Source: Utricularia gibba (lineage: Eukaryota > Plantae > Magnoliophyta). Taken from it: a DNA stretch of 64,000 bases. Position 1 is the first letter of the stretch. Each line of letters opens with the position of its first letter. Position numbers and translations under genes: made by a program. The notes beneath the pieces are model-generated. The model saw nothing but the letters and a program-made list of their open reading frames with translations, searched no databases and had not been told where the DNA came from. The stretch spans positions 3,596,001-3,660,000 of the forward strand of contig NEEC01000004.1 of assembly GCA_002189035.1 (NCBI GenBank), given 5' to 3'. Positions 1-49,970 of this stretch are shown piece after piece.

Positions 1-974
1 ACTAGGACTAACTCAGGACTACAACGAAATACAGTAAAGAAAAGTAACAAGTTTGGATTCGATAGTTTCTGGAATGGAATGGGTGATACCTTGGAACTCT
101 TAAGGGATGTATGCATATCACTAAACAAGCTCACATAAATCAAAAATCATTCAACTAACTCACAAGATCTAGGTCTACCCAGATTCTTGTTTTTCCCCCT
201 AATCTTTGGTCTACCTCTAATTAGGGTTGTTAGTTGGGTTTCACTACTTCCCCCTCCTGGATCTATCCTGCTTTGTTAAGGAAGTAGTGTGACTTATGAT
301 TTATTAGGTCTAAGGATGGATTAGCATATTTCTCCTCTTCTCACCCCAAGGCATCCCCCTGTAAGTGCTTAGCTACTCATGGTAATGGAAAGTAAAACAT
401 CTTCATAGCAGATACTGAGCAATATCTTGGCTACAAATGCTAAACAACAACGAGCAATATGAAGCAAAAGTAGGACAAACACTTCGTTCACATAGGAAAT
501 CCAAATCTAGTCTTAGCTAGGAATAGTAAACATGAAGAACGAAAATAATTTTTCAAGAGAAGCTGTGTTCTTCTAGTTCGTCGTCCCCTCCTTCTTCTTC
601 TCTTAGAAAAATCTCCAGAAACTTCTCTTGAAATCTCCAAAGGGAGATCTCCTTCTCTCTCCAACTTTCCTCCATTTTTGTTCAAAATCTTCCTTTTTCA
701 CCTCCTTGGACTTTGTGTGTACTCTTCTTCAAACTTCTGTCACCTTTCCTGCCACCACACTATTCATACTCGGCTCCCTTGGATTTGTGTTGCGACCCAT
801 GCTGCACTACTCGAAAGGAACTGTTAGAATTGCGATTTAGTCCCAACTAAGACTAAAAGTGCACTCCTACAATACTTATGTGCAAAAATATAGAAACAGG
901 CAATTAAGCTTACTTTTTGTAGCATAAAATGAGTAAATTCCATGCATTGAGCCACTAAAAAATGTGTTATCACA
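1..974 (-). mobile_element. Element-1 family LTR copy A (truncated by window start)
   Basis: Matches 23048-24021 and ends ...GTTATCACA followed by the same ATGCT flank. Confidence 0.9.
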
Positions 975-2029
975 ATGCTATCGGGATTTTGTCATTTTCC
1001 ATTTCAACTACTTTTTCATTTTTCTTGGACACTTCTTTTATTGCTTCAGGTTGGTTTGGGCAATATTAAACATAATATGAGTTGATGCTGTGACACGGAT
1101 TATAATAATTAGAAAACAAATTAAGTTTATAAACAATCAAAATTTGACTTATCAAAAAAATAATAAACAACCAACGTTTAATTTTTTCAATGTTTGACAT
1201 TCATTTTTATTTTATAATTTTATGTAATTTTTACATTTAACTTCTTTATAGGTTAAAGTGAGCAATATATTTGAAAATATTTGATTAAGAGAATCAATAA
1301 TAATAATAAGTTAATTTTATAAACGAATTGTGTATGAAATTGTTTTTTATAATTTTTCTAAACACAAAGATATTTTACATATTTTTAAAGAGGGGTAGAC
1401 TTAAAACTTATTTGCCGAAATTTAAAAATATATATATTATCAATGAAGAATTAATATAAATAAGAATAAAGTGTAAAATTATCTTTTATTAATTGGAATT
1501 AAACTATCTATTCTAAATATGCATGCTATTTTAAATATATATTGGTAAATATATATATTTTCATTATATACTACCTATTATTTAAATACAAAAAATTAAA
1601 TATTTAAAATACTCTTTCAAACGCAAACTGTTTATTTTAAAAAAACTCAGGTAAAATAATCGAGTGTGCCTTAATTGCTGTCTGGAAATTTAAACAATTT
1701 TATGAATTAGAAAAAAAAAAAAACGGAGATGCTTCTTCTTCTTCTTTTTTTGTTTTGTTTTGTTTTAACATGGATTGTGCATGAGACGGCAGGGCACCCC
1801 GCAGATTTGGGGAATGCTGTTTGAACCGTTCGTCATTCCATTTTTCTCTCGACCGATGCTCTTCACTTCTTCTCTCGTTTCTCTGCAATGCATTCCTCAT
1901 TTCTTCTCCATCACCTCGACGCTGAACCTTGTTTCTACCACATTTTCACCTAGAACAAAACCCATTTCTCCAACGGAGTGGTTGCTCTGTTGATCGGGGG
2001 TGCCATCACTCTCGTCTGTGGCCGGCGAT

Positions 2030-3527
2030 ATGGCTTCCGTTAACAACCATGCAATGGACGGCGACCACCCAGATATCGAGAATGGCGCAGATGACTGGCC
2101 CATCGACCCGGATTTCTCCGATCCCTTCGACATTGCCAACACCAAGAAGGCGTCGCGAGAATCGCTCAAGCGTTGGAGGGTAAGATTTCGAGCATCCTGG
2201 TTTTTATTGCAGGAACTCGTGTTTTTCTACCACCCGAACTCCTCTCATGTTTTTATAACAGCAAGCTGCGCTTGTGCTCAATGCTACCCGCCGGTTTCGA
2301 TACACGTTAGATTTGAGAAAAGATGAAGAGCAAGATAAGAGGAGGCGTATGATTAGAGCGCATGCTCAAGTCATTCGGGTGATGAAGTCTAAATGCCATC
2401 AACTACCATTTCATTCCTTTTTAACTTCTTGATGTTAAACTTGCAATTCCATCGTAGGCTGCTTTGCTCTTCAAATTGGCTGGGCAGAGAGCGATAGGTG
2501 CTTCTGTATTCTCTATCTTCTGCTTTTGTGATAATTCGAAAATCATCATCTTTAAATAGGGTTTCATTCAGTTCTAGGTACTTCAGTTTCTCCTCCCTCT
2601 CCAAGTGGGGAGTATGGCATTGCACTTGAGCAGCTTGCTTCAATGAATAAGGACCAGAATGTTTCTGCACTGGAGCAGTATGGAGGGGCAAGATGACTGC
2701 ATCCTTTATACCACTTTCATGTTTTTCTTGCAATGCGTGTACCCCACAAACTAATATCAACACAACTTCAGGTTAAAGGTCTATCAGAGATGCTGAAGAC
2801 AAACTCTGAGACAGGGATTGATGGAGATGATGTATTGGAAAGAAGGAAGGCCTATGGGTCAAATACGTATCCTGTGAAAAAAGGAAGAAGTTTCTTGGTA
2901 ATGATTCATTTGTATTCTATGGCAATAAGTCTTTTGTCTCTTCTATTGTATTTTGGAGCTTTTGTTCACATCTTTTTTTTTTGAACATTCCGTTTCTGCT
3001 CCTTACCCAGTTATTTTTGTGCAGATGTTCCTATGGGACGCTTGGCAAGATTTGACTCTCATTATCTTAATCTTTGCTGCTGTAATATCATTGGTTCTTG
3101 GAATAAAAACTGAGGTTATTTTGCCTTCTCGGAGATTCGACACACTGTTGTCTAGATCATGATGAACCTGAGCTGCAGTCATGCCTAATTTGAGTAATTT
3201 CTGTTGCGTTTATAGGGCATCCAACAAGGATGGTATGATGGGGGAAGCATTGCCTTTGCAGTTTTTCTGGTTATTTTTGTCACAGGTGATTCCAATTTAT
3301 TCTCCATCAAAGTTGCAAACATTCTGTTCTCCAATTTATATTTTCTTTTGACACCGAGGAAGTATTAACTATGAACTGTAATTTTTTAAAAGTGAGGCTC
3401 TTTTCTCAAATTTTTTCAGCCTAATGATTTTTCTGATTGGTGTGTTTGATTCATAAGTGATTTATTTGATTCTATTTTGATTGCATTCATTAATTTAAAA
3501 TTGATCTGTTAGTGATGATGCACATTC
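2030..3527 (+). pseudogene. ACA9: Truncated ACA9-like Ca2+-ATPase copy 1 (exons 1-7 and part of intron 7)
   Basis: [12 protein letters not shown]...[46 protein letters not shown]. Matches 25081-26577 and is cut off in intron 7. Confidence 0.9.
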
Positions 3528-3529
3528 AT

Positions 3530-4276
3530 AAAAATCCACCTGTTGCAGAGTCCACCAAGGCCCTATCTATGTATAGAAGACCATCATAAAAAATACTTGA
3601 TCAATGCATTGGTCTGAAATCCATGGTGTGGACAGGAGCCTAGCAGGTTTTTAAAGCGTTCCCAATATTCATGTAGAGATTCTCCACTGTTTGCTCAATG
3701 TCACTGATCTCCTTCCTTATTCCTCCAGCTTTTGAAGCAGGGAATTATTTGCTGAGAAATACATTCTTCATCCCACTCCAATCTGTGATACTTCCCGGCT
3801 TCAAAGAGTTAAACCATGTTTTTGCACTCCCTTCCAGTGTAAATTGGAATGCCCTCAAACAGATGGCATCCTCAGTCATACCAGCACTCTTAAAAGAGGT
3901 GCAAACAGCAGTCACGTTGTCAAGATGTTCATGGGTTCTCACCCACTTTTCCATAATACTTGGGCAGAAAATTAATCATAGCTGGCTTCAATTCGTTGGC
4001 TGTGTCATCAGAGAACCTAATACACAGCCCTCTGTACGTATGGTCAGCTGCATCAAGCTCATTCAGGGTCTTCTCCTATTCTGCCATATTGAAATTAGTT
4101 TGAGCAACAGCAGCGAGTCTGCTCAACCTTGCTGCTTCTCTCACTCTTGTGCGGTTCTTGCTGATAGTTCTCTCGATTTCTGGATGGAAAACAAGATCAC
4201 CTACACTAGAAGAACGCAAATGCATCAACCGAATCACAAAACAATTAAACACCGCTCCCCGGAAACGGCGCCAATT
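3530..4276 (-). mobile_element. Athila gag 5' fragment, leader and tRNA-Asp PBS (copy 1; PBS 4256-4273)
   Basis: Matches 22114-22860. Encodes MHLRSSSVGDLVFHPEIERT and LRAFQFTLEGSAKTWFNSL (retrotransposon gag motif). Confidence 0.9.
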
Positions 4277-5437
4277 TGATAAACGAAAAATTGTACAAGT
4301 CGTTAATTGCAAATTTTCCTATCAAATAAATTTATAACCTAACCCACATTCAAGTATAAAACAATTATGAGCATAGTGATTAGGGTCGAACACGAAGAGC
4401 AGGTGCTTGTCAAGTGATTAGCCAAAGCATGAAATCAGTGTCATGTTGGTAAAATTGGTCTTAACTAGGACTAACTCAGGACTACAACGAAATACAGTAA
4501 AGAAAAGTAACAAGTTTGGATTCGATAGTTTCTGGAATGGAATGGGTGATACCTTGGAACTCTTAAGGGATGTATGCATATCACTAAACAAGCTCACATA
4601 AATCAAAAATCATTCAACTAACTCACAAGATCTAGGTCTACCCAGATTCTTGTTTTTCCCCCTAATCTTTGGTCTACCTCTAATTAGGGTTGTTAGTTGG
4701 GTTTCACTACTTCCCCCTCCTGGATCTATCCTGCTTTGTTAAGGAAGTAGTGTGACTTATGATTTATTAGGTCTAAGGATGGATTAGCATATTTCTCCTC
4801 TTCTCACCCCAAGGCATCCCCCTGTAAGTGCTTAGCTACTCATGGTAATGGAAAGTAAAACATCTTCATAGCAGATACTGAGCAATATCTTGGCTACAAA
4901 TGCTAAACAACAACGAGCAATATGAAGCAAAAGTAGGACAAACACTTCGTTCACATAGGAAATCCAAATCTAGTCTTAGCTAGGAATAGTAAACATGAAG
5001 AACGAAAATAATTTTTCAAGAGAAGCTGTGTTCTTCTAGTTCGTCGTCCCCTCCTTCTTCTTCTCTTAGAAAAATCTCCAGAAACTTCTCTTGAAATCTC
5101 CAAAGGGAGATCTCCTTCTCTCTCCAACTTTCCTCCATTTTTGTTCAAAATCTTCCTTTTTCACCTCCTTGGACTTTGTGTGTACTCTTCTTCAAACTTC
5201 TGTCACCTTTCCTGCCACCACACTATTCATACTCGGCTCCCTTGGATTTGTGTTGCGACCCATGCTGCACTACTCGAAAGGAACTGTTAGAATTGCGATT
5301 TAGTCCCAACTAAGACTAAAAGTGCACTCCTACAATACTTATGTGCAAAAATATAGAAACAGGCAATTAAGCTTACTTTTTGTAGCATAAAATGAGTAAA
5401 TTCCATGCATTGAGCCACTAAAAAATGTGTTATCACA
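4277..5437 (-). mobile_element. Element-1 family LTR copy B (1161 bp)
   Basis: TG...CA termini, adjacent to the PBS, matches 22861-24021. Confidence 0.92.
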
Positions 5438-6496
5438 ATGCTATCGGGATTTTGTCATTTTCCATTTCAACTACTTTTTCATTTTTCTTGGACACTTCTT
5501 TTTATTGCTTCAGGTTGGTTTGGGCAATATTAAACATAATATGAGTTGATGCTGTGACACGGATTATAATAATTAGAAAACAAATTAAGTTTATAAACAA
5601 TCAAAATTTGACTTATCAAAAAATAATAAACAACCAACGTTTAATTTTTTCAATGTTTGACATTCATTTTTATTTTTATAATTTTATGTAATTTTTACAT
5701 TTAACTTCTTTATAGGTTAAAGTGAGCAATATATTTGAAAATATTTGATTAAGAGAATCAATAATAATAATAAGTTAATTTTATAAACGAATTGTGTATG
5801 AAATTGTTTTTTATAATTTTTTCTAAACACAAAGATATTTTACATATTTTTAAAGAGGGGTAGACTTAAAACTTATTTGCCGAAATTTAAAAATATATAT
5901 ATTATCAATGAAGAATTAATATAAATAAGAATAAAGTGTAAAATTATCTTTTTATTAATTGGAATTAAACTATCTATTCTAAATATGCATGCTATTTTAA
6001 ATATATATTGGTAAATATATATATTTTCATTATATACTACCTATTATTTAAATACAAAAAATTAAATATTTAAAATACTCTTTCAAACGCAAACTGTTTA
6101 TTTTAAAAAAACTCAGGTAAAATAATCGAGTGTGCCTTAATTGCTGTCTGGAAATTTAAACAATTTTATGAATTAGAAAAAAAAAAAAACGGAGATGCTT
6201 CTTCTTCTTCTTTTTTTGTTTTGTTTTGTTTTAACATGGATTGTGCATGAGACGGCAGGGGCACCCCGCAGATTTGGGGAATGCTGTTTGAACCGTTCGT
6301 CATTCCATTTTTCTCTCGACCGATGCTCTTCACTTCTTCTCTCGTTTCTCTGCAATGCATTCCTCATTTCTTCTCCATCACCTCGACGCTGAACCTTGTT
6401 TCTACCACATTTTCACCTAGAACAAAACCCATTTCTCCAACGGAGTGGTTGCTCTGTTGATCGGGGGTGCCATCACTCTCGTCTGTGGCCGGCGAT

Positions 6497-7994
6497 ATGG
6501 CTTCCGTTAACAACCATGCAATGGACGGCGACCACCCAGATATCGAGAATGGCGCAGATGACTGGCCCATCGACCCGGATTTCTCCGATCCCTTCGACAT
6601 TGCCAACACCAAGAAGGCGTCGCGAGAATCGCTCAAGCGTTGGAGGGTAAGATTTCGAGCATCCTGGTTTTTATTGCAGGAACTCGTGTTTTTCTACCAC
6701 CCGAACTCCTCTCATGTTTTTATAACAGCAAGCTGCGCTTGTGCTCAATGCTACCCGCCGGTTTCGATACACGTTAGATTTGAGAAAAGATGAAGAGCAA
6801 GATAAGAGGAGGCGTATGATTAGAGCGCATGCTCAAGTCATTCGGGTGATGAAGTCTAAATGCCATCAACTACCATTTCATTCCTTTTTAACTTCTTGAT
6901 GTTAAACTTGCAATTCCATCGTAGGCTGCTTTGCTCTTCAAATTGGCTGGGCAGAGAGCGATAGGTGCTTCTGTATTCTCTATCTTCTGCTTTTGTGATA
7001 ATTCGAAAATCATCATCTTTAAATAGGGTTTCATTCAGTTCTAGGTACTTCAGTTTCTCCTCCCTCTCCAAGTGGGGAGTATGGCATTGCACTTGAGCAG
7101 CTTGCTTCAATGAATAAGGACCAGAATGTTTCTGCACTGGAGCAGTATGGAGGGGCAAGATGACTGCATCCTTTATACCACTTTCATGTTTTTCTTGCAA
7201 TGCGTGTACCCCACAAACTAATATCAACACAACTTCAGGTTAAAGGTCTATCAGAGATGCTGAAGACAAACTCTGAGACAGGGATTGATGGAGATGATGT
7301 ATTGGAAAGAAGGAAGGCCTATGGGTCAAATACGTATCCTGTGAAAAAAGGAAGAAGTTTCTTGGTAATGATTCATTTGTATTCTATGGCAATAAGTCTT
7401 TTGTCTCTTCTATTGTATTTTGGAGCTTTTGTTCACATCTTTTTTTTTTGAACATTCCGTTTCTGCTCCTTACCCAGTTATTTTTGTGCAGATGTTCCTA
7501 TGGGACGCTTGGCAAGATTTGACTCTCATTATCTTAATCTTTGCTGCTGTAATATCATTGGTTCTTGGAATAAAAACTGAGGTTATTTTGCCTTCTCGGA
7601 GATTCGACACACTGTTGTCTAGATCATGATGAACCTGAGCTGCAGTCATGCCTAATTTGAGTAATTTCTGTTGCGTTTATAGGGCATCCAACAAGGATGG
7701 TATGATGGGGGAAGCATTGCCTTTGCAGTTTTTCTGGTTATTTTTGTCACAGGTGATTCCAATTTATTCTCCATCAAAGTTGCAAACATTCTGTTCTCCA
7801 ATTTATATTTTCTTTTGACACCGAGGAAGTATTAACTATGAACTGTAATTTTTTAAAAGTGAGGCTCTTTTCTCAAATTTTTTCAGCCTAATGATTTTTC
7901 TGATTGGTGTGTTTGATTCATAAGTGATTTATTTGATTCTATTTTGATTGCATTCATTAATTTAAAATTGATCTGTTAGTGATGATGCACATTC
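6497..7994 (+). pseudogene. ACA9: Truncated ACA9-like copy 2 (exons 1-7)
   Basis: Same sequence as copy 1 shifted by 4467. Exon 7 ends at 7752. Confidence 0.9.
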
Positions 7995-7996
7995 AT

Positions 7997-8743
7997 AAAA
8001 ATCCACCTGTTGCAGAGTCCACCAAGGCCCTATCTATGTATAGAAGACCATCATAAAAATACTTGATCAATGCATTGGTCTGAAATCCATGGTGTGGACA
8101 GGAGCCTAGCAGGTTTTTAAAGCGTTCCCAATATTCATGTAGAGATTCTCCACTTGTTTGCTCAATGTCACTGATCTCCTTCCTTATTCCTCCAGCTTTT
8201 GAAGCAGGGAATTATTTGCTGAGAAATACATTCTTCATCCCACTCCAATCTGTGATACTTCCCGGCTTCAAAGAGTTAAACCATGTTTTTGCACTCCCTT
8301 CCAGTGTAAATTGGAATGCCCTCAAACAGATGGCATCCTCAGTCATACCAGCACTCTTAAAAGAGGTGCAAACAGCAGTCACGTTGTCAAGATGTTCATG
8401 GGTTCTCACCCACTTTTCCATAATACTTGGGCAGAAAATTAATCATAGCTGGCTTCAATTCGTTGGCTGTGTCATCAGAGAACCTAATACACAGCCCTCT
8501 GTACGTATGGTCAGCTGCATCAAGCTCATTCAGGGTCTTCTCCTATTCTGCCATATTGAAATTAGTTTGAGCAACAGCAGCGAGTCTGCTCAACCTTGCT
8601 GCTTCTCTCACTCTTGTGCGGTTCTTGCTGATAGTTCTCTCGATTTCTGGATGGAAAACAAGATCACCTACACTAGAAGAACGCAAATGCATCAACCGAA
8701 TCACAAAACAATTAAACACCGCTCCCCGGAAACGGCGCCAATT
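7997..8743 (-). mobile_element. Athila gag 5' fragment and PBS (copy 2; PBS 8723-8740)
   Basis: Matches 22114-22860. Confidence 0.9.
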
Positions 8744-9904
8744 TGATAAACGAAAAATTGTACAAGTCGTTAATTGCAAATTTTCCTATCAAATAAATTT
8801 ATAACCTAACCCACATTCAAGTATAAAACAATTATGAGCATAGTGATTAGGGTCGAACACGAAGAGCAGGTGCTTGTCAAGTGATTAGCCAAAGCATGAA
8901 ATCAGTGTCATGTTGGTAAAATTGGTCTTAACTAGGACTAACTCAGGACTACAACGAAATACAGTAAAGAAAAGTAACAAGTTTGGATTCGATAGTTTCT
9001 GGAATGGAATGGGTGATACCTTGGAACTCTTAAGGGATGTATGCATATCACTAAACAAGCTCACATAAATCAAAAATCATTCAACTAACTCACAAGATCT
9101 AGGTCTACCCAGATTCTTGTTTTTCCCCCTAATCTTTGGTCTACCTCTAATTAGGGTTGTTAGTTGGGTTTCACTACTTCCCCCTCCTGGATCTATCCTG
9201 CTTTGTTAAGGAAGTAGTGTGACTTATGATTTATTAGGTCTAAGGATGGATTAGCATATTTCTCCTCTTCTCACCCCAAGGCATCCCCCTGTAAGTGCTT
9301 AGCTACTCATGGTAATGGAAAGTAAAACATCTTCATAGCAGATACTGAGCAATATCTTGGCTACAAATGCTAAACAACAACGAGCAATATGAAGCAAAAG
9401 TAGGACAAACACTTCGTTCACATAGGAAATCCAAATCTAGTCTTAGCTAGGAATAGTAAACATGAAGAACGAAAATAATTTTTCAAGAGAAGCTGTGTTC
9501 TTCTAGTTCGTCGTCCCCTCCTTCTTCTTCTCTTAGAAAAATCTCCAGAAACTTCTCTTGAAATCTCCAAAGGGAGATCTCCTTCTCTCTCCAACTTTCC
9601 TCCATTTTTGTTCAAAATCTTCCTTTTTCACCTCCTTGGACTTTGTGTGTACTCTTCTTCAAACTTCTGTCACCTTTCCTGCCACCACACTATTCATACT
9701 CGGCTCCCTTGGATTTGTGTTGCGACCCATGCTGCACTACTCGAAAGGAACTGTTAGAATTGCGATTTAGTCCCAACTAAGACTAAAAGTGCACTCCTAC
9801 AATACTTATGTGCAAAAATATAGAAACAGGCAATTAAGCTTACTTTTTGTAGCATAAAATGAGTAAATTCCATGCATTGAGCCACTAAAAAATGTGTTAT
9901 CACA
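8744..9904 (-). mobile_element. Element-1 family LTR copy C (1161 bp)
   Basis: Matches LTR B and LTR E. Confidence 0.92.
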
Positions 9905-10963
9905 ATGCTATCGGGATTTTGTCATTTTCCATTTCAACTACTTTTTCATTTTTCTTGGACACTTCTTTTTATTGCTTCAGGTTGGTTTGGGCAATATTAA
10001 ACATAATATGAGTTGATGCTGTGACACGGATTATAATAATTAGAAAACAAATTAAGTTTATAAACAATCAAAATTTGACTTATCAAAAAATAATAAACAA
10101 CCAACGTTTAATTTTTTCAATGTTTGACATTCATTTTTATTTTTATAATTTTATGTAATTTTTACATTTAACTTCTTTATAGGTTAAAGTGAGCAATATA
10201 TTTGAAAATATTTGATTAAGAGAATCAATAATAATAATAAGTTAATTTTATAAACGAATTGTGTATGAAATTGTTTTTTATAATTTTTTCTAAACACAAA
10301 GATATTTTACATATTTTTAAAGAGGGGTAGACTTAAAACTTATTTGCCGAAATTTAAAAATATATATATTATCAATGAAGAATTAATATAAATAAGAATA
10401 AAGTGTAAAATTATCTTTTTATTAATTGGAATTAAACTATCTATTCTAAATATGCATGCTATTTTAAATATATATTGGTAAATATATATATTTTCATTAT
10501 ATACTACCTATTATTTAAATACAAAAAATTAAATATTTAAAATACTCTTTCAAACGCAAACTGTTTATTTTAAAAAAACTCAGGTAAAATAATCGAGTGT
10601 GCCTTAATTGCTGTCTGGAAATTTAAACAATTTTATGAATTAGAAAAAAAAAAAAACGGAGATGCTTCTTCTTCTTCTTTTTTTGTTTTGTTTTGTTTTA
10701 ACATGGATTGTGCATGAGACGGCAGGGGCACCCCGCAGATTTGGGGAATGCTGTTTGAACCGTTCGTCATTCCATTTTTCTCTCGACCGATGCTCTTCAC
10801 TTCTTCTCTCGTTTCTCTGCAATGCATTCCTCATTTCTTCTCCATCACCTCGACGCTGAACCTTGTTTCTACCACATTTTCACCTAGAACAAAACCCATT
10901 TCTCCAACGGAGTGGTTGCTCTGTTGATCGGGGGTGCCATCACTCTCGTCTGTGGCCGGCGAT

Positions 10964-12461
10964 ATGGCTTCCGTTAACAACCATGCAATGGACGGCGACC
11001 ACCCAGATATCGAGAATGGCGCAGATGACTGGCCCATCGACCCGGATTTCTCCGATCCCTTCGACATTGCCAACACCAAGAAGGCGTCGCGAGAATCGCT
11101 CAAGCGTTGGAGGGTAAGATTTCGAGCATCCTGGTTTTTATTGCAGGAACTCGTGTTTTTCTACCACCCGAACTCCTCTCATGTTTTTATAACAGCAAGC
11201 TGCGCTTGTGCTCAATGCTACCCGCCGGTTTCGATACACGTTAGATTTGAGAAAAGATGAAGAGCAAGATAAGAGGAGGCGTATGATTAGAGCGCATGCT
11301 CAAGTCATTCGGGTGATGAAGTCTAAATGCCATCAACTACCATTTCATTCCTTTTTAACTTCTTGATGTTAAACTTGCAATTCCATCGTAGGCTGCTTTG
11401 CTCTTCAAATTGGCTGGGCAGAGAGCGATAGGTGCTTCTGTATTCTCTATCTTCTGCTTTTGTGATAATTCGAAAATCATCATCTTTAAATAGGGTTTCA
11501 TTCAGTTCTAGGTACTTCAGTTTCTCCTCCCTCTCCAAGTGGGGAGTATGGCATTGCACTTGAGCAGCTTGCTTCAATGAATAAGGACCAGAATGTTTCT
11601 GCACTGGAGCAGTATGGAGGGGCAAGATGACTGCATCCTTTATACCACTTTCATGTTTTTCTTGCAATGCGTGTACCCCACAAACTAATATCAACACAAC
11701 TTCAGGTTAAAGGTCTATCAGAGATGCTGAAGACAAACTCTGAGACAGGGATTGATGGAGATGATGTATTGGAAAGAAGGAAGGCCTATGGGTCAAATAC
11801 GTATCCTGTGAAAAAAGGAAGAAGTTTCTTGGTAATGATTCATTTGTATTCTATGGCAATAAGTCTTTTGTCTCTTCTATTGTATTTTGGAGCTTTTGTT
11901 CACATCTTTTTTTTTTGAACATTCCGTTTCTGCTCCTTACCCAGTTATTTTTGTGCAGATGTTCCTATGGGACGCTTGGCAAGATTTGACTCTCATTATC
12001 TTAATCTTTGCTGCTGTAATATCATTGGTTCTTGGAATAAAAACTGAGGTTATTTTGCCTTCTCGGAGATTCGACACACTGTTGTCTAGATCATGATGAA
12101 CCTGAGCTGCAGTCATGCCTAATTTGAGTAATTTCTGTTGCGTTTATAGGGCATCCAACAAGGATGGTATGATGGGGGAAGCATTGCCTTTGCAGTTTTT
12201 CTGGTTATTTTTGTCACAGGTGATTCCAATTTATTCTCCATCAAAGTTGCAAACATTCTGTTCTCCAATTTATATTTTCTTTTGACACCGAGGAAGTATT
12301 AACTATGAACTGTAATTTTTTAAAAGTGAGGCTCTTTTCTCAAATTTTTTCAGCCTAATGATTTTTCTGATTGGTGTGTTTGATTCATAAGTGATTTATT
12401 TGATTCTATTTTGATTGCATTCATTAATTTAAAATTGATCTGTTAGTGATGATGCACATTC
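10964..12461 (+). pseudogene. ACA9: Truncated ACA9-like copy 3 (exons 1-7)
   Basis: Same sequence as copy 2 shifted by 4467. Exon 7 ends at 12219. Confidence 0.9.
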
Positions 12462-12463
12462 AT

Positions 12464-13210
12464 AAAAATCCACCTGTTGCAGAGTCCACCAAGGCCCTAT
12501 CTATGTATAGAAGACCATCATAAAAATACTTGATCAATGCATTGGTCTGAAATCCATGGTGTGGACAGGAGCCTAGCAGGTTTTTAAAGCGTTCCCAATA
12601 TTCATGTAGAGATTCTCCACTTGTTTGCTCAATGTCACTGATCTCCTTCCTTATTCCTCCAGCTTTTGAAGCAGGGAATTATTTGCTGAGAAATACATTC
12701 TTCATCCCACTCCAATCTGTGATACTTCCCGGCTTCAAAGAGTTAAACCATGTTTTTGCACTCCCTTCCAGTGTAAATTGGAATGCCCTCAAACAGATGG
12801 CATCCTCAGTCATACCAGCACTCTTAAAAGAGGTGCAAACAGCAGTCACGTTGTCAAGATGTTCATGGGTTCTCACCCACTTTTCCATAATACTTGGGCA
12901 GAAAATTAATCATAGCTGGCTTCAATTCGTTGGCTGTGTCATCAGAGAACCTAATACACAGCCCTCTGTACGTATGGTCAGCTGCATCAAGCTCATTCAG
13001 GGTCTTCTCCTATTCTGCCATATTGAAATTAGTTTGAGCAACAGCAGCGAGTCTGCTCAACCTTGCTGCTTCTCTCACTCTTGTGCGGTTCTTGCTGATA
13101 GTTCTCTCGATTTCTGGATGGAAAACAAGATCACCTACACTAGAAGAACGCAAATGCATCAACCGAATCACAAAACAATTAAACACCGCTCCCCGGAAAC
13201 GGCGCCAATT
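12464..13210 (-). mobile_element. Athila gag 5' fragment and PBS (copy 3; PBS 13190-13207)
   Basis: Matches 22114-22860. Confidence 0.9.
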
Positions 13211-14370
13211 TGATAAACGAAAAATTGTACAAGTCGTTAATTGCAAATTTTCCTATCAAATAAATTTATAACCTAACCCACATTCAAGTATAAAACAATT
13301 ATGAGCATAGTGATTAGGGTCGAACACGAAGAGCAGGTGCTTGTCAAGTGATTAGCCAAAGCATGAAATCAGTGTCATGTTGGTAAAATTGGTCTTAACT
13401 AGGACTAACTCAGGACTACAACGAAATACAGTAAAGAAAAGTAACAAGTTTGGATTCGATAGTTTCTGGAATGGAATGGGTGATACCTTGGAACTCTTAA
13501 GGGATGTATGCATATCACTAAACAAGCTCACATAAATCAAAAATCATTCAACTAACTCACAAGATCTAGGTCTACCCAGATTCTTGTTTTTCCCCCTAAT
13601 CTTTGGTCTACCTCTAATTAGGGTTGTTAGTTGGGTTTCACTACTTCCCCTCCTGGATCTATCCTGCTTTGTTAAGGAAGTAGTGTGACTTATGATTTAT
13701 TAGGTCTAAGGATGGATTAGCATATTTCTCCTCTTCTCACCCCAAGGCATCCCCCTGTAAGTGCTTAGCTACTCATGGTAATGGAAAGTAAAACATCTTC
13801 ATAGCAGATACTGAGCAATATCTTGGCTACAAATGCTAAACAACAACGAGCAATATGAAGCAAAAGTAGGACAAACACTTCGTTCACATAGGAAATCCAA
13901 ATCTAGTCTTAGCTAGGAATAGTAAACATGAAGAACGAAAATAATTTTTCAAGAGAAGCTGTGTTCTTCTAGTTCGTCGTCCCCTCCTTCTTCTTCTCTT
14001 AGAAAAATCTCCAGAAACTTCTCTTGAAATCTCCAAAGGGAGATCTCCTTCTCTCTCCAACTTTCCTCCATTTTTGTTCAAAATCTTCCTTTTTCACCTC
14101 CTTGGACTTTGTGTGTACTCTTCTTCAAACTTCTGTCACCTTTCCTGCCACCACACTATTCATACTCGGCTCCCTTGGATTTGTGTTGCGACCCATGCTG
14201 CACTACTCGAAAGGAACTGTTAGAATTGCGATTTAGTCCCAACTAAGACTAAAAGTGCACTCCTACAATACTTATGTGCAAAAATATAGAAACAGGCAAT
14301 TAAGCTTACTTTTTGTAGCATAAAATGAGTAAATTCCATGCATTGAGCCACTAAAAAATGTGTTATCACA
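13211..14370 (-). mobile_element. LTR D: 3' LTR of element 1 and also the 5' LTR of the last array unit
   Basis: PBS and gag lie on its left and the element 3' internal region on its right. It differs from LTR E only by one C in a C-run near 13647. The terminal inverted repeat TGATAAC...GTTTATCA suggests the true end may be 14368. Confidence 0.92.
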
Positions 14371-15232
14371 TTATGCTACAACGACACTAGACTTGTCCTC
14401 AAGTCCTAACTAAAACTAATAGGAGGTAAATAGTCAATGAATCTCGTACAGAGCGATGTGGATGCTTAACATTCAGCTAAAAACGCATGAGTTGTAGGGT
14501 GCTAGTGTGCATGGGAGGGTGTCACTCAAGCATACATGACAATTTCATCTTGAAAGGTGCATTCGAAGATGAAATGAGCAAAAATGGCATGTGCTTACCT
14601 CCAAAGAGTGCTGATTGTCACTACTGTTTTTCTTTTCTTTTCTTTTCATTCTCTCTTTTCCCCCTTTTTTTTTCCTACAGAGATCGACACCAGGGGAATT
14701 TAGAGTTCAACTCAGGTAAACTGTTGCTTCCCCTCTTTGTATGAGACTGTGGGCAATGCACTCTCCTCCTTATTCCTCCAGGGGTGCATTCTACTCCTCT
14801 GAGTTGTTCTTATGACCTCCCTGTGCTCTTTACTCTGCTGTCTACACACGCTTTTTTGTTGTATGTTGCTTTTCAAGACTTGGGTCTCATCGCTTTTCTG
14901 TTGATGATGCTTTTCTTTTTTTGACCCATTTGTTTTTGCTATCTACAAATTTTGTGACTAGTCCCCCATGAAAAATCAACACATGCCAATCTACTAAAAA
15001 AAAATCTTGAATGCACCAATCTGACTACATTTAACATGTTGCTATCTCACAAAAATAATAGAAGGGAAAACATGCTCACTGGTTTATAAACTGGCCATAA
15101 CAAAACTCCTGCATTTCGTGCATCATGAAAAACATCCCATGCTTGTACGAAATTCCTCAACCATTCACAAAATCCTCTTGACCACAATGCCGTACTACCA
15201 AATTACTCCTAATTTAGACTAATGCCATAAAG

Positions 15233-15255
15233 ATAAAAATAAACATAAAAATAAA

Positions 15256-15286
<31 letters not shown>

Positions 15287-15312
15287 TAAAATAAAAATAA
15301 AAATGAAAATAA
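15233..15312. repeat. (AATAAA/TAAAAA)n low-complexity tract in the element-1 3' UTR
   Basis: Directly visible repeat just downstream of the env-like ORF stop. Confidence 0.85.
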
Positions 15313-15333
15313 AGATGAGGCATTGCAACGATG

Positions 15334-17126
15334 TTACTTGATCAGGGAGGAGTCCTTCACTCCCTGTTTCAGTTCTTTCACTTCCCTTAACAAATCCTCA
15401 AGTCTGTCATAAACCATGTCAATTTGCTCTTTGCAGCAGCAGCCCTTTTCTTTCGTTCGGTTTGTGAGTGTTTGAGTAGAATTTCCTCCCTTTTCCTTCA
15501 ATGGGGGTTCTTTCCTGCATAACCCTGCAAGAGACCTAAAGACAAACCCACTCCCTCGTGCCTGAATTAGTCCTGAAGTCTTAAGGAAATGAGCATTTAA
15601 AGGGACAATTTTTTGTTCAACATGAAACAATGTCAATTCTGTGATCCTATCCGCACACAGCACTCTAGCTAAGAATGTGACTACATTACCGAATCTGAGC
15701 TGATTGATGGTTCTACGCCTGTAGTCACGGTTCATCTGTTCTGCTAAAATTGCACCTAGGTTCAAAGATTTTTTGTGCAGAAGACACCACATAACAAACA
15801 GCTCACGCTTATACGAGGAATTGAACCCTATAACACGTCCGAACAGAACAGCAGAAATTAAGAGATGAACATATCTCGTGGCAGGATCAGTGAATAAATC
15901 TGCCTTGGTGCCCTTAGATTTAAACTCGATGACAAACTGATCAGTCAACAATCCATACACCTCCTCAGCATCAAACTCATCAGGATAATCAAATAATGAT
16001 GTAGCAAAAGCATGCGAGTTCACATCATGTTCTGAGCAGAATCCTAGCACAACATTCCATTCAGCAAGAGAGAACGAAAACTCTTTTCCTAGCAATCTAA
16101 ATGTCACAGCAGCAGGTGTCAAAACTGTCTCAGGTTTTTCAAATAAAAAGGTAGCAGCAAATTCATAGGTTAACTCGACATATGCAAGGTAGTTCATGTC
16201 ACACAATAATAACAGATTCGTGCCCTCCAACATAGAATAAACATTCTCAACAATTCCTAATTCAACTAAAATTTCATAATCAATTATATGACTATGTGTG
16301 ATTTATGTTTCTCCTCTCCTGCATGTTTTCCTGAACTTAAAAACAATGGAACCAGGTTAGGTAGATATTTCTCCCATTTTGTCTCAATTTCTACTTCAAC
16401 ATCCTCTTCCTTGTCCAACTCTTCTGCCTCTTGTTCAGGTTCTATTGTTTTCTTGGTTTTACTCCTCATCCTTCTTGCAACAAGGCCTCCATCACCATAT
16501 TCTTCAGTCATTGTTGCAACGTCTGTTGTTGCTTCTTCTCCTCCCTGTTGAACTTGCTCTTGAGTGCTGGGTTACACCTCTATTTCTCTAGCCACTTCTT
16601 CCATCTTTTCTGAAGTGTCCTCAGCACTTGCTGTCATCATTTCCACTTCGGGATTCGTCTACTCCATTTCGTCTACCATGATCTTTTCTGTTGTTGCCTG
16701 TTTGGTGGTTTCTGTTGGCTTCCTTTGGGCCTTTCTCCCTGTCTTTTTCTTTTGATAAACAATCTTCGGTTGCTTATCAGGTGCCTCCTCCATGACCAGT
16801 TTTCCTTTTCCCTTGTAACTCTTCCTCAATGCTTGCAATTTCTGTTGGAGGTCAGGACTAGCAGGAGACTTTAATCGTGGGCTTCTCCTTTCCATCACTG
16901 GAGTTCCTCCTGCTTTCAGAGAGGAAGTTCCACCCGATTTTGATGCATGCCGGAGAGCTTCCACACCCTGAAACGCTTCTTCAGCTGAGGTTGCGACTCT
17001 GGTTTGTTCCTGGTTAGGAGTAATAGTGACTGCCTTTTCAGTTTTCTTGCGTTTGCTGCTTTCAGCAGCGATCTTTCTGTCCGATTTTGCAGCAGCAGCA
17101 CTCTGATGTTGGTGTTTTGCAAGCAT
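15334..17126 (-). pseudogene. Athila extra 3' ORF (env-like / putative plant transposon protein), about 600 codons with 3 in-frame stops
   Basis: ORFs 16659-17162, 16284-16511 and 15334-16233 share one frame. YVELTYEF and FRLLGKEFSFSLAEWNVVLGF motifs are also seen in the element-2 counterpart. Confidence 0.75.
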
Positions 17127-17460
17127 CTTGTGAGATAATTTTTCTGCAACCCTCAAGAACACGATGAAGAGTTTTGAAACAAAGTGAACGTTACAAAGTA
17201 ATTTACCCCCAAATTTTCAAAAGGGTTTGGGGGCAGTTCTGTAAAATCCTAACAGTTAGTCACAACCCTTGTACTTTACTTTCCTATAACCGCAATGCAA
17301 CTCCCCCATTTTGCAAAAGGAACACGACACAGATTCTCCAAAATTACTTCTAGCTAAGTCTAAAAATGCAGAAGTAAAATAACAAGAAAATAAAACTAAC
17401 AGAAATTAAACTTGGGTTGCCTCCCAAGAGCGTCCTTGTTTTTAGTCCTGGACTAGACTT

Positions 17461-20400
17461 TCAGCAAATTCTACGTCGTTTCCATTTTAGAAATTCAACT
17501 TCTTCAGCAAACCTGTTTTGAAGATTTTCATAAAAAATCTTCAACCTATGTCCATTCAAAATAAAACTTGTGTTAGTCCCTCCATCATAAACCTCTACTG
17601 TTCCGTTTGGGAAAACTTCTTTCACTACAAATGGTCCAGTCCAACGAGATTTGAATTTCCCTAGGTGTAACTTCAGTCTGGATTGAAACAGCAACACTTT
17701 TTGACCAACTTCGAAGGACCTCCTGGAAATATGCTTGTCGTGGTAACTTTTAGTCCTTGCTTTGAATAACTTTGAGCTTTCGTATGCATCATTTCTCAGC
17801 TCTTCCAGTTCTGAGAGCTGCAATTTTCTTTGGCTTGCACTAAGACTTTCATCAAGGTTTAGCCTCTTCACTACCCACCAGGCCTTGTGCTCTAATGCAA
17901 CAGGTAACCTGCAGGGTTTTCCATAAACTAGCCTGAATTAAGAGGTCCCAATTGGTGTTTTATACGCTGTTCGGATTGCCCATAAAGCATCCCTCAGTCT
18001 AAGACTCCAGTCCTTCCTGTTCGGGTTTACCACTTTCTCTAAAATCTGTTTAATCTCCCTGTTTGATACCTCCGTCTGGTCATTTGTTTGTGGATGGTAT
18101 GCTGTTGATGGCTTGTACCAAACGTTGAACTGCTTCAATACACTTCTCAAGGCCTGATTATAAAAATGCGTACCTTGGTCACTAATCAGCGCCTTGGGAG
18201 TCCCATATCGCACAAAAATGTTATTACGCAGAAAATTTATCACTGTCTTTGCGTCATCTGTCCTGGTAGGAATGGCTTTAATCCACTTTGAGACGTAATC
18301 AACAGCTACTAAAATATAGTTGTAGCCTGCAGAAGTAGGGAATGGCCCCATAAAATCAATGCCCCAAACATCAAATAATTCACATATCAGGATTCCTTGC
18401 TGAGGCATTTTGTCCCAATTGGATAAATTTCCCACTCTTTGGTATGGCTCACAACCCTTGCAATAAGCGTAACAGTCTCTGAAGATGTGAGGCCAGTAGA
18501 ATCCACAGTCTAAAATTTTCCTGGCTGTACGGTTTGGTCCATGATGGCCACCAAACGGTCCTGCATGACAAGAATTGATAATTTTAGGAATTTCAAACTC
18601 ATGAACACACTTTCTAATGACACCATCATTGCATCTCTTCCAAAGGTAAGGATCGTCCCAAATATAATATTTGGCGTCACTCTTCAGTTTGTTCTTCATG
18701 TGATAATCAATTCCCGGCGGCATCACTCCTGCTGAAACAAAGTTAGCCAAGTCTACAAACCACGGTTCACGAATATTAGTCCTAACTAAGAATAATTGTT
18801 CATCCGGAAATGTTTCAGTGATAGGACTATTATTCTTCAGCCCTTTCATCCTGCTGAGATGGTCAGCGACCATGTTCTCTTTCCCAGGTCTGTCTTTAAT
18901 TTCCACATCAAACTCCTGAACAAGGAGAACCCATCTGATCAATCGTGGTTTGGTCTCCTTCTTCTCCATCAAATGTTTTACTGCTGAATGGTCTATGTAG
19001 ACCACAACTTTGCTCCCGAGAAGATAGGAACAAAATTTCTCCAAAGCAAAAATCACAGCTAAAAATTCTCTTTCAGTCACAGTGTAATTTTTCTGGGCAT
19101 CATCTAAAGTTTTGGAAGCATAAGAAATAACATGATGTTTCCCTTCAATTTTCTGTCCTAAAACCGCCCCTACAGCATGGCTACTAGCATCACACATAAT
19201 TTCGAAATCATACCTCCAGTTTGGTGGTTGAATCACAGGAGTAGTAGTCACAGCCTCTTTTAAGCAATTAAAAGCATTTTTGCATGAATCATCAAAAATA
19301 AATTCCACATCATTATGCAAAAGTCTACTAAGAGGCAAGGCAATCTTAGAAAAATTCTGAATAAATCTTCTATAAAAACCAACATGTCCCAGAAATGATC
19401 TCACACCTTTAACATCAATTGGATACGGTAACTCAGTCATAATTTCGATTTTTGTTTTGTCTACCTCAATTCCCTTCCTAGAAATAACATGGCCAAGCAC
19501 AATTCCATGATCAACCATAAAATGACATTTTTCAGAATTAAGAACAAGATTTTTTTCAACACATTTTCGCAAAACCTAATCCAAATGGTCTAAACATGAC
19601 TCATAATCCTCTCCATACACTGTAAAATCGTTCATAAAAATTTCTATGAAATCCTCACCAAAGTTTGAGAAGATGCTGATCATACACCTCTGGAAGGTAG
19701 CAAGGGCGTTGCACAACCCAAAGGGCATCCTTCTATAGGCATAAGTCCCAAATGGACAGGTAAAAGTAGTCTTATCTTGATCCGTACCTGAAATTGCAAC
19801 TTGGTTATATCCAGAATAACCATCTAAGAAACAATAAAAAGATTTTCTTGCTAATTTTTCGAGCATTTGATCAATGAAAGGTAAGGGGTAATAGTCCTTC
19901 TTGGTCACTTCATTTAATTTCCTATAGTCTATGCATACTCTCCATCCATTTTGAATTCTTTAAGGCACCAGCTCTCCCTTCTCGTTCTCCACCACTGTCA
20001 TACCAGTCTTCTTGCGCACCACATGGATTGGACTCACCCATTCACTGTCTGTGATGGAATAGATAATACCTGCATCATGGAGTTTTACAATTTCCTTCTT
20101 TACCACTTCCATCATATTTAGGTTGAGGCGTCTTTGTGGCTGGCGAACAGGTTTTGCTCCATCTTCTAATAAAATCCTGTGCATACATATAGAGGGAGAG
20201 ATGCCTTCAATATCTGCAAGAGTCCAGCCAATCGCCTTCTTATTCCTTATCAGCACGTCCAATAGTCGCGACTCTTGGTCTAAGCTAAGACTATTTGAGA
20301 TGATAATTGGGTTGTTCATTTCTTCATCCAAGAATGCGTACTTCAGGTGTGTAGGCAGTGGCTTCAGCTTAGCTGTCCTCTCCTCCAGGGTCTTGCCTTG

Positions 20401-22809: not shown

Positions 22810-22839
22810 CAACCGAATCACAAAACAATTAAACACCGC

Positions 22840-22857
22840 TCCCCGGAAACGGCGCCA
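22840..22857 (-). other. Primer-binding site complementary to the tRNA-Asp(GTC) 3' end (TGGCGCCGTTTCCGGGGA, 1 mismatch)
   Basis: Lies 3 nt inside the 5' LTR. Matches the recalled plant tRNA-Asp 3' end UCCCCGGCAACGGCGCCA at 17/18. Confidence 0.9.
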
Positions 22858-22860
22858 ATT

Positions 22861-24021
22861 TGATAAACGAAAAATTGTACAAGTCGTTAATTGCAAATTT
22901 TCCTATCAAATAAATTTATAACCTAACCCACATTCAAGTATAAAACAATTATGAGCATAGTGATTAGGGTCGAACACGAAGAGCAGGTGCTTGTCAAGTG
23001 ATTAGCCAAAGCATGAAATCAGTGTCATGTTGGTAAAATTGGTCTTAACTAGGACTAACTCAGGACTACAACGAAATACAGTAAAGAAAAGTAACAAGTT
23101 TGGATTCGATAGTTTCTGGAATGGAATGGGTGATACCTTGGAACTCTTAAGGGATGTATGCATATCACTAAACAAGCTCACATAAATCAAAAATCATTCA
23201 ACTAACTCACAAGATCTAGGTCTACCCAGATTCTTGTTTTTCCCCCTAATCTTTGGTCTACCTCTAATTAGGGTTGTTAGTTGGGTTTCACTACTTCCCC
23301 CTCCTGGATCTATCCTGCTTTGTTAAGGAAGTAGTGTGACTTATGATTTATTAGGTCTAAGGATGGATTAGCATATTTCTCCTCTTCTCACCCCAAGGCA
23401 TCCCCCTGTAAGTGCTTAGCTACTCATGGTAATGGAAAGTAAAACATCTTCATAGCAGATACTGAGCAATATCTTGGCTACAAATGCTAAACAACAACGA
23501 GCAATATGAAGCAAAAGTAGGACAAACACTTCGTTCACATAGGAAATCCAAATCTAGTCTTAGCTAGGAATAGTAAACATGAAGAACGAAAATAATTTTT
23601 CAAGAGAAGCTGTGTTCTTCTAGTTCGTCGTCCCCTCCTTCTTCTTCTCTTAGAAAAATCTCCAGAAACTTCTCTTGAAATCTCCAAAGGGAGATCTCCT
23701 TCTCTCTCCAACTTTCCTCCATTTTTGTTCAAAATCTTCCTTTTTCACCTCCTTGGACTTTGTGTGTACTCTTCTTCAAACTTCTGTCACCTTTCCTGCC
23801 ACCACACTATTCATACTCGGCTCCCTTGGATTTGTGTTGCGACCCATGCTGCACTACTCGAAAGGAACTGTTAGAATTGCGATTTAGTCCCAACTAAGAC
23901 TAAAAGTGCACTCCTACAATACTTATGTGCAAAAATATAGAAACAGGCAATTAAGCTTACTTTTTGTAGCATAAAATGAGTAAATTCCATGCATTGAGCC
24001 ACTAAAAAATGTGTTATCACA
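22861..24021 (-). mobile_element. LTR E: 5' LTR of element 1
   Basis: Adjacent to the PBS and followed by the host ACA9 upstream region. Confidence 0.93.
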
Positions 24022-41652: not shown

Positions 41653-41670
41653 TATTCCCCCACACTTAAA
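41653..41670 (-). other. Polypurine tract of element 2 (TTTAAGTGTGGGGGAATA)
   Basis: Abuts the 3' LTR. A second copy lies at 42441-42460. Confidence 0.85.
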
Positions 41671-44187: not shown

Positions 44188-44476
44188 TGTGGGTCGAAAA
44201 ATCAGAGAATTTCAGGCGAGAGAAGGAAGAATTGGAGCGTAGGCACAACAGCGAAGTGGGGTAACGGTCAGTAAAAATGGGAATGCCAAAAGAGAAAAAG
44301 GGAGATTGAGTGTAGAAACGGTTAAGAGAGTAAGTGGTGGCGTGGGCAGGTGAAAGTAAAGTCACTTGAAGTAGTAGGTGATAAAAACGAGGAAATAGTA
44401 ACGGTTACGAAATTAAAGTCATGGGTTGCCTCCCATGCAGCGCCAATTTACAGTCATTGGCCGACTGTGACATCTG

Positions 44477-49860: not shown

Positions 49861-49970
49861 AAAAATAGAGAAAAACAACAGCAAAACGGAAATAAAAGAA
49901 AAACGAGAAGAAAGAAAGAAAAAGAAAAGAAAAAGAAAAACTATAAACACTAAACACAAAAATACACAAC

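Follow-up and report, generated by a model that had tools for sequence, protein, structure and literature searches.

Related arrangements of genes and transposons

The closest described system to the locus reported here is the Su(Ste)/crystal array, which is directed against Stellate in Drosophila melanogaster. It consists of tandem target-homologous units, carries in each unit a transposon oriented for antisense transcription, and is linked to male fertility (PMC7874207). The same layout is found in a window of 64,000 nucleotides (the whole stretch of DNA that was analysed) from contig NEEC01000004.1 of Utricularia gibba, i.e. tandem units homologous to a neighbouring Ca2+-ATPase gene, each with a transposon antisense to the homologous part. 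Su(Ste) is an animal, piRNA-based, Y-linked and old system with hundreds of diverged copies, in which antisense transcripts and small RNAs have been demonstrated, whereas the present array is a handful of substitution-free plant copies that lie beside the target, in cis to it.

In plants, the Y-linked partial duplicates of ARR17 in poplar and OGI/MeGI in persimmon are comparable in that partial 5' copies could silence the intact gene via small RNAs and methylation (PMC7843427). As inverted repeats, the ARR17 and OGI loci encode a hairpin, whereas the array is strictly direct, without an inverted copy in the window, so that dsRNA could arise only by convergent transcription or through an RNA-dependent RNA polymerase. 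An inverted duplication of the target part, of the ARR17, OGI or PAI1-PAI4 hairpin type, was not found: no inverted repeat of at least 150 bp occurs anywhere in the window, nor did a search of 12000-27000 reveal one. A hairpin mechanism was rejected for this reason.

In wheat, read-out antisense transcripts from the LTR of Wis2-1A lower the expression of adjacent genes. There, too, an LTR promoter is aimed antisense into a neighbouring gene, but the Wis2-1A LTR reads into an intact gene, whereas the LTRs of the array read into truncated duplicates and the LTR upstream of the intact gene faces away from it. Direct tandem repeats near a gene are also known from maize b1 paramutation, where seven 853-bp repeats are transcribed on both strands and silencing is siRNA-dependent; unlike the array, these repeats are a non-coding enhancer about 100 kb upstream and depend on intact RNA-directed DNA methylation (RdDM). 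Transposon-bounded segmental tandem duplications and LTR-sharing element arrays resemble the locus in their single illegitimate junction, in a putative amplification by unequal exchange and in their shared LTRs. The interior of the pseudo-element is, however, a gene fragment with its own putative promoter and not retroelement coding sequence as in ordinary tandem LTR arrays.

Anatomy of the array

The landmarks of the array were determined by self-comparison and from a k-mer map of the window. The repeat is far beyond chance. A unit of 4,467 bp recurs head-to-tail: it occupies 3530-7994 and 7997-12461 in full, and a further copy at 1-3527 is truncated by the edge of the window. The minus strand of each unit holds parts of a degenerate Athila-type element, namely a 1,161-bp LTR, a PBS and a gag fragment. 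The plus strand holds part of a Ca2+-ATPase gene of the ACA8/9/10 clade, from 1,060 bp of upstream sequence through coding exons 1-7 into intron 7, most of which is included.

The leftmost unit enters the window with the right-hand 974 bp of its LTR (1-974, minus strand; the remainder lies left of the window) and continues with its gene part at 975-3527 on the plus strand, i.e. the upstream region (975-2029), exons 1-7 (2030-3285) and the intron 7 remnant (3286-3527), followed by a filler dinucleotide AT at 3528-3529. The next unit has its gag fragment (Retrotrans_gag by Pfam) and PBS (4257-4273) at 3530-4276 and its 1,161-bp LTR, with TG..CA ends, at 4277-5437, all on the minus strand, and this LTR points leftward into the truncated gene copy of the preceding unit. 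Its own gene part is at 5438-7994 on the plus strand, with the upstream region, exons 1-7 (6497-7752) and the intron 7 remnant, and the filler AT is at 7995-7996. In the third unit the minus-strand part (7997-9904) holds the gag fragment, the PBS (8724-8740) and the LTR (8744-9904), and the plus-strand part (9905-12461) holds the upstream region, exons 1-7 (10964-12219) and the intron 7 remnant, with the filler AT at 12462-12463. A half unit on the minus strand (12464-14370) completes the array; it comprises a gag fragment, a PBS (13191-13207) and the last array LTR (13211-14370), which doubles as the 3' LTR of a complete element. The source copy of the retroelement part is found at 22114-24021 on the minus strand (5' part of gag, PBS 22841-22857, 5' LTR 22861-24021) and that of the gene part at 24022-26577 on the plus strand (1,060 bp upstream, exons 1-7 at 25081-26335, and the part of intron 7 before the breakpoint). 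The breakpoint at 26577, which matches the unit ends, lies inside intron 7, 31 nt short of the exon 8 acceptor.

An earlier sequence-only reading of this DNA had described units in which LTR, PBS and gag read leftward and the gene promoter rightward, and self-comparison, the k-mer map and Pfam all agree with it. It was also right that each unit runs into intron 7 and exons 7 to 1, as there are seven coding exons per unit and the break is within intron 7, and its limits of 2030-13210 are exact landmarks, namely the first ATG and the base preceding the last array LTR. The same reading spoke of built-in convergent promoters. The opposed geometry holds for all units in the window: each truncated gene copy has the LTR of the following unit aimed into it, convergent with the gene's upstream region, LTR and upstream region both being assumed to act as promoters. 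A built-in design, on the other hand, does not follow, since the layout is a by-product of the duplication end points. The element lies antisense to and upstream of the gene, so that a tandem copy across their boundary places an LTR downstream of, and aimed into, a truncated gene copy; as any boundary-spanning tandem copy would do so, no design is needed for convergence.

Identity and age of the copies

The junction between intron 7, the filler AT and gag is letter-for-letter the same in all three junctions seen in the window. Over about 18.8 kb of aligned copies the differences consist of 10 single-base homopolymer indels, six of them concentrated in one copy, and there are no substitutions. 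Because the copies differ in homopolymer indels only, the array is extremely young, too young for any sign of selection; assuming 7e-9 substitutions per site per generation, a rough upper bound of its age is about 23,000 generations. The copy number is that of one long-read-type assembly showing homopolymer errors.

The Athila-type element

Two LTRs with TG..CA ends (13211-14370 and 22861-24021) enclose domains in the order gag-PR-RT-RH-INT. On the minus strand, Pfam detected Retrotrans_gag in the retained fragment and then protease, RT, RNase H, integrase and ATHILA ORF-1. The unique interior (14371-22113, minus strand) contains, from left to right, an ATHILA ORF-1-like ORF, integrase, RNase H, RT, protease and the rest of gag. 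The extra ORF beyond the integrase, within 15337-16302, matched PF03078 with 25.5 bits against a cut-off of 20.2. Judging by these domains, the element is a Ty3/gypsy LTR retrotransposon of the Athila lineage. A PBS-like 17-mer, which we take to match tRNA-Asp, begins 3 nt past the LTR; no tRNA gene was found within the window. No polypurine tract is evident beside the 3' LTR, and a target-site duplication is not readable there because this LTR is flanked by array sequence.

The element has lost the coding capacity of an autonomous copy. It contains four in-frame stops, at 22329-22331 (in gag), 19960-19962, 19576-19578 and 17938-17940, and its gag is frame-shifted near 22515. In a motif search of the LTR, U3, R and U5 could not be assigned; its only TATA-like motif is about 60 nt from the PBS-side end, and its only AATAAA is upstream of that motif. 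With the four in-frame stops and no assignable U3/R/U5, the LTR may be inactive. No Rfam family was matched, and a bacterial-type promoter/terminator scan was disregarded as inapplicable to a plant.

The Ca2+-ATPase gene

An intact ACA gene follows the last unit at 25081-31609 on the plus strand, with 33 exons, canonical splice sites and a product of 1,071 aa; its exons 8-33 lie between 26578 and the last base of the stop codon, 31609. In the plus-strand exons Pfam detected CaATP_NAI, Cation_ATPase_N, E1-E2_ATPase and Cation_ATPase_C. The last three meet the Pfam cut-offs, and a Hydrolase match is below its cut-off. CaATP_NAI, i.e. the autoinhibitory, calmodulin-binding N-terminus, is located in exons 1-2, and exon 2 aligns with the calmodulin-binding region of ACA8 (PDB 4aqr_D, E = 2e-10, and 8qmp_A). 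The phosphorylation motif DKTGTLT is in exon 28109-28192, and a cotton ACA of 1,089 aa can be aligned with the 1,071-aa model over the whole length of both. By these sequence features, the gene is classified as a plasma-membrane autoinhibited P-type IIB Ca2+-ATPase of the ACA8/9/10 clade. In Arabidopsis this pump clade acts in pollen germination and fertility, and copines bind to ACA9 at its N-terminal segment (PMC6032332).

The frame of the full-length gene is broken at two positions. The source gene copy alone is without one G at 26290 (G4, against G5 in the array copies), and a second 1-nt break is found in a C run near 31010. True pseudogenisation is unlikely, given that both are 1-nt homopolymer changes like those between the repeat copies. 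The only two frame breaks of the gene are of the same error class as the differences between the copies, an observation that fits a young structural variant.

The assignment to ACA9, which is the pollen pump of Arabidopsis and the name under which the gene was first read, is only moderately supported. In a maximum-likelihood tree whose sequences came from a search seeded with the cotton protein, i.e. only ACA10/8-named proteins and one Brassica ACA9-like sequence, none of them given the name ACA9 by a curated source, the gene was sister to the Brassica protein, which is presumably ACA9-like, with support 66/95.7 and with both branches long. A position within the asterid ACA10-named clade was rejected by the AU test (p = 0.02). 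By raw identity, the ACA10-named proteins are closer (70-75% vs 65-68%). A one-exon search of a representative library gave mostly fragments, and their names and pairwise identities did not separate ACA9 from ACA8/10.

Origin and possible function of the array

In our judgement the array is probably a very recent structural variant rather than an evolved device. An Athila-type LTR retrotransposon would have stood head-to-head with the ACA8/9/10-clade gene, with 1,060 bp between its 5' LTR and the start codon. A single non-homologous event would then have joined intron 7 to mid-gag sequence by way of the 2-bp filler AT and so have created the 4,467-bp unit, which leads from the gag fragment through PBS and LTR to the upstream region and exons 1-7 of the gene. 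This unit may then have been amplified by unequal sister-chromatid exchange or through a circular or rolling-circle intermediate, and the position of the array, left of the interior of the element, would result from homologous LTR-LTR exchange. The left end of the array, which bears on the choice between unequal exchange and circle integration, lies outside the window. The most likely outcome would be an ordinary young repeat next to a functional intact gene, any antisense or chimeric RNA being incidental. From its youth and geometry we infer that the array is neutral and serves no selected function. We note, nevertheless, that five or more promoter-bearing copies beside a gene could easily affect that gene.

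The array, or most of its copies, might be absent from the plant if the long-read assembly had over-expanded a single duplication or a repeat-rich region. Copies that differ only in homopolymer length, a typical long-read consensus error, with 6/10 of the differences in one copy, would be in keeping with this, and the array including the part left of the window may exceed a typical read length. Such an artefact is nevertheless unlikely: tandem repeats are usually collapsed by assemblers, not expanded; copies that arise as missed-adapter chimeras are inverted, whereas those of the array are direct; the non-homologous join, which is specific and has a filler, is seen three times in the window; and the flanks are coherent on both sides, with a complete element and a complete gene. 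An exact look-up of three window ORFs in public assemblies gave no match, and neither did large protein searches in which the exon 1 ORF and a 193-aa ORF on the strand opposite gag were the queries. ORFs spanning the junction are at most 31 aa, too short for a protein-based look-up, and the 33-nt junction was absent from metagenome contigs, a collection not expected to hold U. gibba. The units might also express residues 1-234 of the pump. This stretch covers the autoinhibitory N-terminus that binds calmodulin, the beginning of the actuator domain and the initial membrane helices, and as a separate fragment it would inhibit pumps in trans or act as a calmodulin or copine sponge. Exons 1-7 of the array copies are in frame over 234 codons (261 aa with intron 7 retained), they encode CaATP_NAI with its similarity to the ACA8 calmodulin-binding region (PDB 4aqr and 8qmp), the full 1,060-bp upstream region is kept in each unit, and in ACA9 it is the N-terminal segment to which copines bind (PMC6032332). 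We consider this role very improbable, however, since with the exon 8 acceptor lost the transcripts would be without a normal 3' end and probably degraded, and since the intact frame follows from the newness of the copies and is hence no evidence of selection.

The sequence-only reading had proposed that the array may silence the neighbouring gene. Antisense RNA from the LTRs and sense RNA from the gene promoters would form dsRNA that Dicer cuts into siRNAs, whereby the full-length pump would be silenced post-transcriptionally or by promoter methylation and pollen performance altered. As an idea this is plausible from the sequence: the geometry is convergent in every unit, the 1,060-bp upstream region of the target and seven of its exons recur in each unit at 100% identity, and the PBS-gag stretch behind the LTR is without AATAAA. 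Athila elements become active again in the pollen of Arabidopsis, and this would have the two promoters at work in the same cells. The clade of the target has a pollen germination and fertility function in Arabidopsis (PMC6032332), and an array of tandem partial gene copies with antisense promoters supplied by transposons, Su(Ste), does act in this way in Drosophila (PMC7874207). As the explanation of the array we still regard silencing as unlikely. There is no hairpin or inverted copy as in the ARR17, OGI and PAI silencer loci, the element is degenerate with its four in-frame stops and the promoter activity of its LTR only putative, two AATAAA motifs stand on the antisense strand in the intron 7 remnant, ahead of exon 7, and the full-length gene appears intact, with its ACA9 orthology only moderately supported. 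Moreover, the RdDM arm of U. gibba is weak, with a truncated DCL3, 24-nt sRNAs making up only 14.4% of reads, and low CHH methylation (PMC8333044). By analogy, one may picture a newborn plant counterpart of Su(Ste), in which LTR antisense RNA through the promoter-bearing pump copies would lead to dsRNA and, with the 24-nt RdDM arm crippled, to 21-22-nt siRNAs, lower expression of the adjacent gene and altered pollen performance or transmission; we give this little credence. The flowers of U. gibba are bisexual, so that the sex linkage for which a test had been suggested does not apply.

If the array is real, it would be an unusually clean natural experiment, in which substitution-free, promoter-bearing partial copies, each faced by an LTR, lie beside the intact gene in a plant whose RNA-directed DNA methylation is reportedly weakened. 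The locus could reveal whether a brand-new direct repeat triggers silencing and by which small-RNA size class, with exons 8-33 as an internal control; if nothing is transcribed, the array is simply a young structural variant. The unaltered junction, for its part, records how a transposon-gene boundary becomes amplified.

Anatomy of the repeat array

Self-comparison of the window revealed a head-to-tail repeat with a unit of 4,467 bp, in which a retroelement part (gag fragment, primer-binding site and LTR) is joined to a truncated copy of a gene for an autoinhibited Ca2+-ATPase (ACA). The units u0 (1-3527, truncated by the window edge), u1 (3530-7994) and u2 (7997-12461) are followed by the half unit u3 (12464-14370), a unique stretch of 7.7 kb (14371-22113) and the source copy (22114-26577), i.e. 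the unit-equivalent sequence that is continuous with the remainder of the ACA gene. Landmarks were placed in each unit by exact k-mer mapping. The sequence-only reading had given positions 2030 and 13210 as its limits, and both proved to be real landmarks in this map: at 2030 the first partial ACA copy has its start codon, and 13210 directly precedes the last array LTR. Together with the alignment of the copies, the self-comparison and the k-mer map confirm the array in detail.

The ACA gene and its likely orthology

The gene model was guided by a 1,089-aa cotton ACA protein from a representative search and was built by local tblastn and a search for splice sites. The full-length model has 33 coding exons (25081-31609) and a product of 1,071 aa; the introns are very short (64-273 bp) and all GT-AG except for one GC-AG. 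The exon pieces match CaATP_NAI (the N-terminal autoinhibitory domain), Cation_ATPase_N, E1-E2_ATPase and Cation_ATPase_C above the Pfam cut-offs and Hydrolase below its cut-off, and exon 2 aligns with the calmodulin-binding region of Arabidopsis ACA8 (PDB 4aqr and 8qmp). The repeat unit holds seven of the coding exons and ends at 26577 within intron 7, 31 nt before the acceptor of exon 8, which agrees with the earlier numbering of the truncated part as intron 7 and exons 7 to 1. A gene of the GDP-fucose protein O-fucosyltransferase family (PF10250; 31799-33149, minus strand) is convergent with the 3' end of the ACA gene at a distance of about 190 bp. The short introns and this narrow gap would fit a compact genome.

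In Arabidopsis the ACA8/9/10 clade is located in the plasma membrane; ACA9 is mainly expressed in pollen and is required for pollen tube growth and fertilisation, and pollen germination is also defective in aca8 and aca10 mutants (PMC6032332). With the cotton protein as the query, 120 proteins were retrieved, most of those with names being ACA10 or ACA8. One Brassica protein of this set has an N- and a C-terminus that we take to be ACA9-like. A joined model of the window gene, taken from the window coordinates with an X at both frame breaks, was used for the reading-frame check and for the tree. In the maximum-likelihood tree the window gene is sister to the ACA9-like Brassica protein (support 66/95.7), and a tree constrained to place it in the asterid ACA10-type clade, a well-supported group in which an ACA10 orthologue of the mint order is expected, was rejected (AU test, p = 0.02). 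We therefore regard the gene as a likely ACA9 orthologue and go no further than this, because both branches are long and ACA10-named proteins have the higher raw identity to it.

The Athila-type element

The LTR next to the ACA gene (22861-24021, minus strand) is 1,161 bp long, begins with TG and ends with CA. Three bases beyond it lies a 17-nt primer-binding site, which presumably matches the 3' end of a plant tRNA-Asp. Retrotrans_gag matches follow on the minus strand (22332-22559 and 21696-22328; Pfam), and leftward of gag there are matches to protease, reverse transcriptase, RNase H and integrase and then an ORF that matches ATHILA ORF-1 above the cut-off. This domain content, together with the ORF-1 match, identifies the element, which extends from 24021 to 13211 on the minus strand, as an Athila-type Ty3/gypsy retrotransposon. 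Gag and pol are interrupted by four in-frame stops (22329-22331, 19960-19962, 19576-19578 and 17938-17940), and the frame of gag is also shifted near 22515; judged by these reading frames, the copy is degenerate.

The two LTRs of the element are identical despite the four stops. The 3' LTR, however, is that of the half unit u3, and its far side is flanked by a primer-binding site and gag, not by host sequence. The identity thus stems from duplication rather than from a recent insertion, and it does not help to date the insertion. Immediately interior to the 3' LTR, at the site expected for the polypurine tract (14371-14400, minus strand), there was no purine-rich sequence; in our reading this segment resembles the 5' end of tRNA-Asp. 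The motif search found a sole TATA-like motif in the LTR, about 60 nt from the end at the primer-binding site, and a sole AATAAA upstream of it, and U3, R and U5 could not be assigned from these motifs. A bacterial-type promoter scan was discarded as not applicable to a plant.

Copy identity and age

The alignment of all copies (about 18.8 kb) contains 10 differences, every one of them a one-base change in homopolymer length; there are no substitutions. Six of the 10 fall in u0, within 760 bp of AT-rich sequence (1035-1795), which suggests that this stretch was locally poorly polished. Such a pattern is characteristic of long-read consensus error, and the real divergence of the copies is therefore probably zero. 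The second LTR element of the window (40345-51302) serves as a comparison: between its LTRs there are five substitutions but no indels, i.e. real divergence in U. gibba looks unlike the differences between the array copies.

The same kind of change affects the full-length gene. At 26290 the source copy has GGGG, as opposed to GGGGG in all array copies, so that the frame of exon 7 is broken in the full-length gene only; a second break lies near 31010, where a C run has changed by 1 nt. Both are probably assembly consensus errors and not real mutations. We read the full-length gene as intact, since two errors over a coding length of 3.2 kb match the error density between the repeat copies. With zero substitutions and an assumed rate of 7e-9 substitutions per site per generation, the amplification would date to at most roughly 23,000 generations ago, and possibly far more recently.

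Origin of the array and of its convergent layout

All three junctions in the window are identical: the intron 7 remnant ends, an extra AT follows, and gag begins. This argues for one illegitimate joining event whose product was then amplified. Look-ups with ORFs close to the junction yielded no independent contig, and the ORFs that cross it are too small for a protein-level search; the junction sequence had no match in metagenome contigs, which carries no weight for a plant locus. The array is found on the left side of the element interior instead of separating the element from the gene, an arrangement that simple tandem duplication does not yield. An unequal homologous exchange between the 3' LTR of the element and an array LTR could have placed it there, or the unit may have integrated into the 3' LTR as a circular or rolling-circle copy. 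Both routes would fit, and they predict different left ends of the array, beyond the window.

At the source copy, 1,060 bp separate the LTR from the ACA gene, the two being head-to-head. The convergent geometry of LTR and gene that had been proposed for the repeat units was found by landmark mapping to be real in u0, u1 and u2. It is also automatic, because any tandem copy across the LTR-gene boundary puts the next LTR downstream of, and facing, the truncated copy. The intact gene is not in a convergent position: its nearest LTR is upstream and oriented away. A transcript started in an array LTR is predicted to run through the primer-binding site, 750 bp of gag, the intron 7 remnant, exons 7 to 1 and the gene upstream region into the next LTR. 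On this strand the motif search found no AATAAA across the primer-binding site and the 750 bp of gag, and two within the intron 7 remnant, ahead of exons 7 to 1. Most likely, the array is a newborn structural variant and its predicted convergent promoters are a by-product.

The earlier reading had gone further and proposed that RNA from the array may silence the intact ACA gene, which we regard as a reasonable but unlikely possibility. The geometry it builds on is real, the units are 100% identical to the target promoter and the first seven exons, and Drosophila Su(Ste) is a well-documented parallel: every tandem unit carries a hoppel transposon from which antisense transcription begins, and these transcripts give rise to the small RNAs that silence Stellate (PMC7874207). 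The plant examples, on the other hand, are of another kind: poplar ARR17, which had been invoked, and persimmon OGI are inverted repeats encoding hairpins (PMC7843427), and self-comparison found no inverted repeat of 150 bp or more in the U. gibba window. Moreover, the LTR may be inactive because the element is decayed, and the array is too young for any trace of selection. Flowers of U. gibba are bisexual, so that sex linkage, suggested earlier as a test, does not apply to the array.

The RNA-directed DNA methylation half of the silencing proposal is weakened by what is known of this species, which has a truncated DCL3, a low level of CHH methylation and a small-RNA pool in which 24-nt RNAs make up 14.4% of reads versus 52.8% for the 21-nt class (PMC8333044). 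A post-transcriptional route with 21-22-nt RNAs may still operate. The locus is worth checking in long-read, RNA-seq and small-RNA data of U. gibba, since the test is simple: exons 1-7 against exons 8-33 of the same gene.

Other features of the window

The stretch at 34001-38000, in the interval from the O-fucosyltransferase gene to the second retrotransposon, is very AT-rich (26% G+C). This retrotransposon (40345-51302, minus strand) has LTRs of 1,309 bp that show no similarity to those of the Athila-type element, a tRNA-Asp-type primer-binding site beside the right LTR, an integrase and a 456-aa ORF that matches Transposase_32. Farther to the right, an ORF on the plus strand (60381-60962) matches the dormancy/auxin-associated protein family (PF05564).
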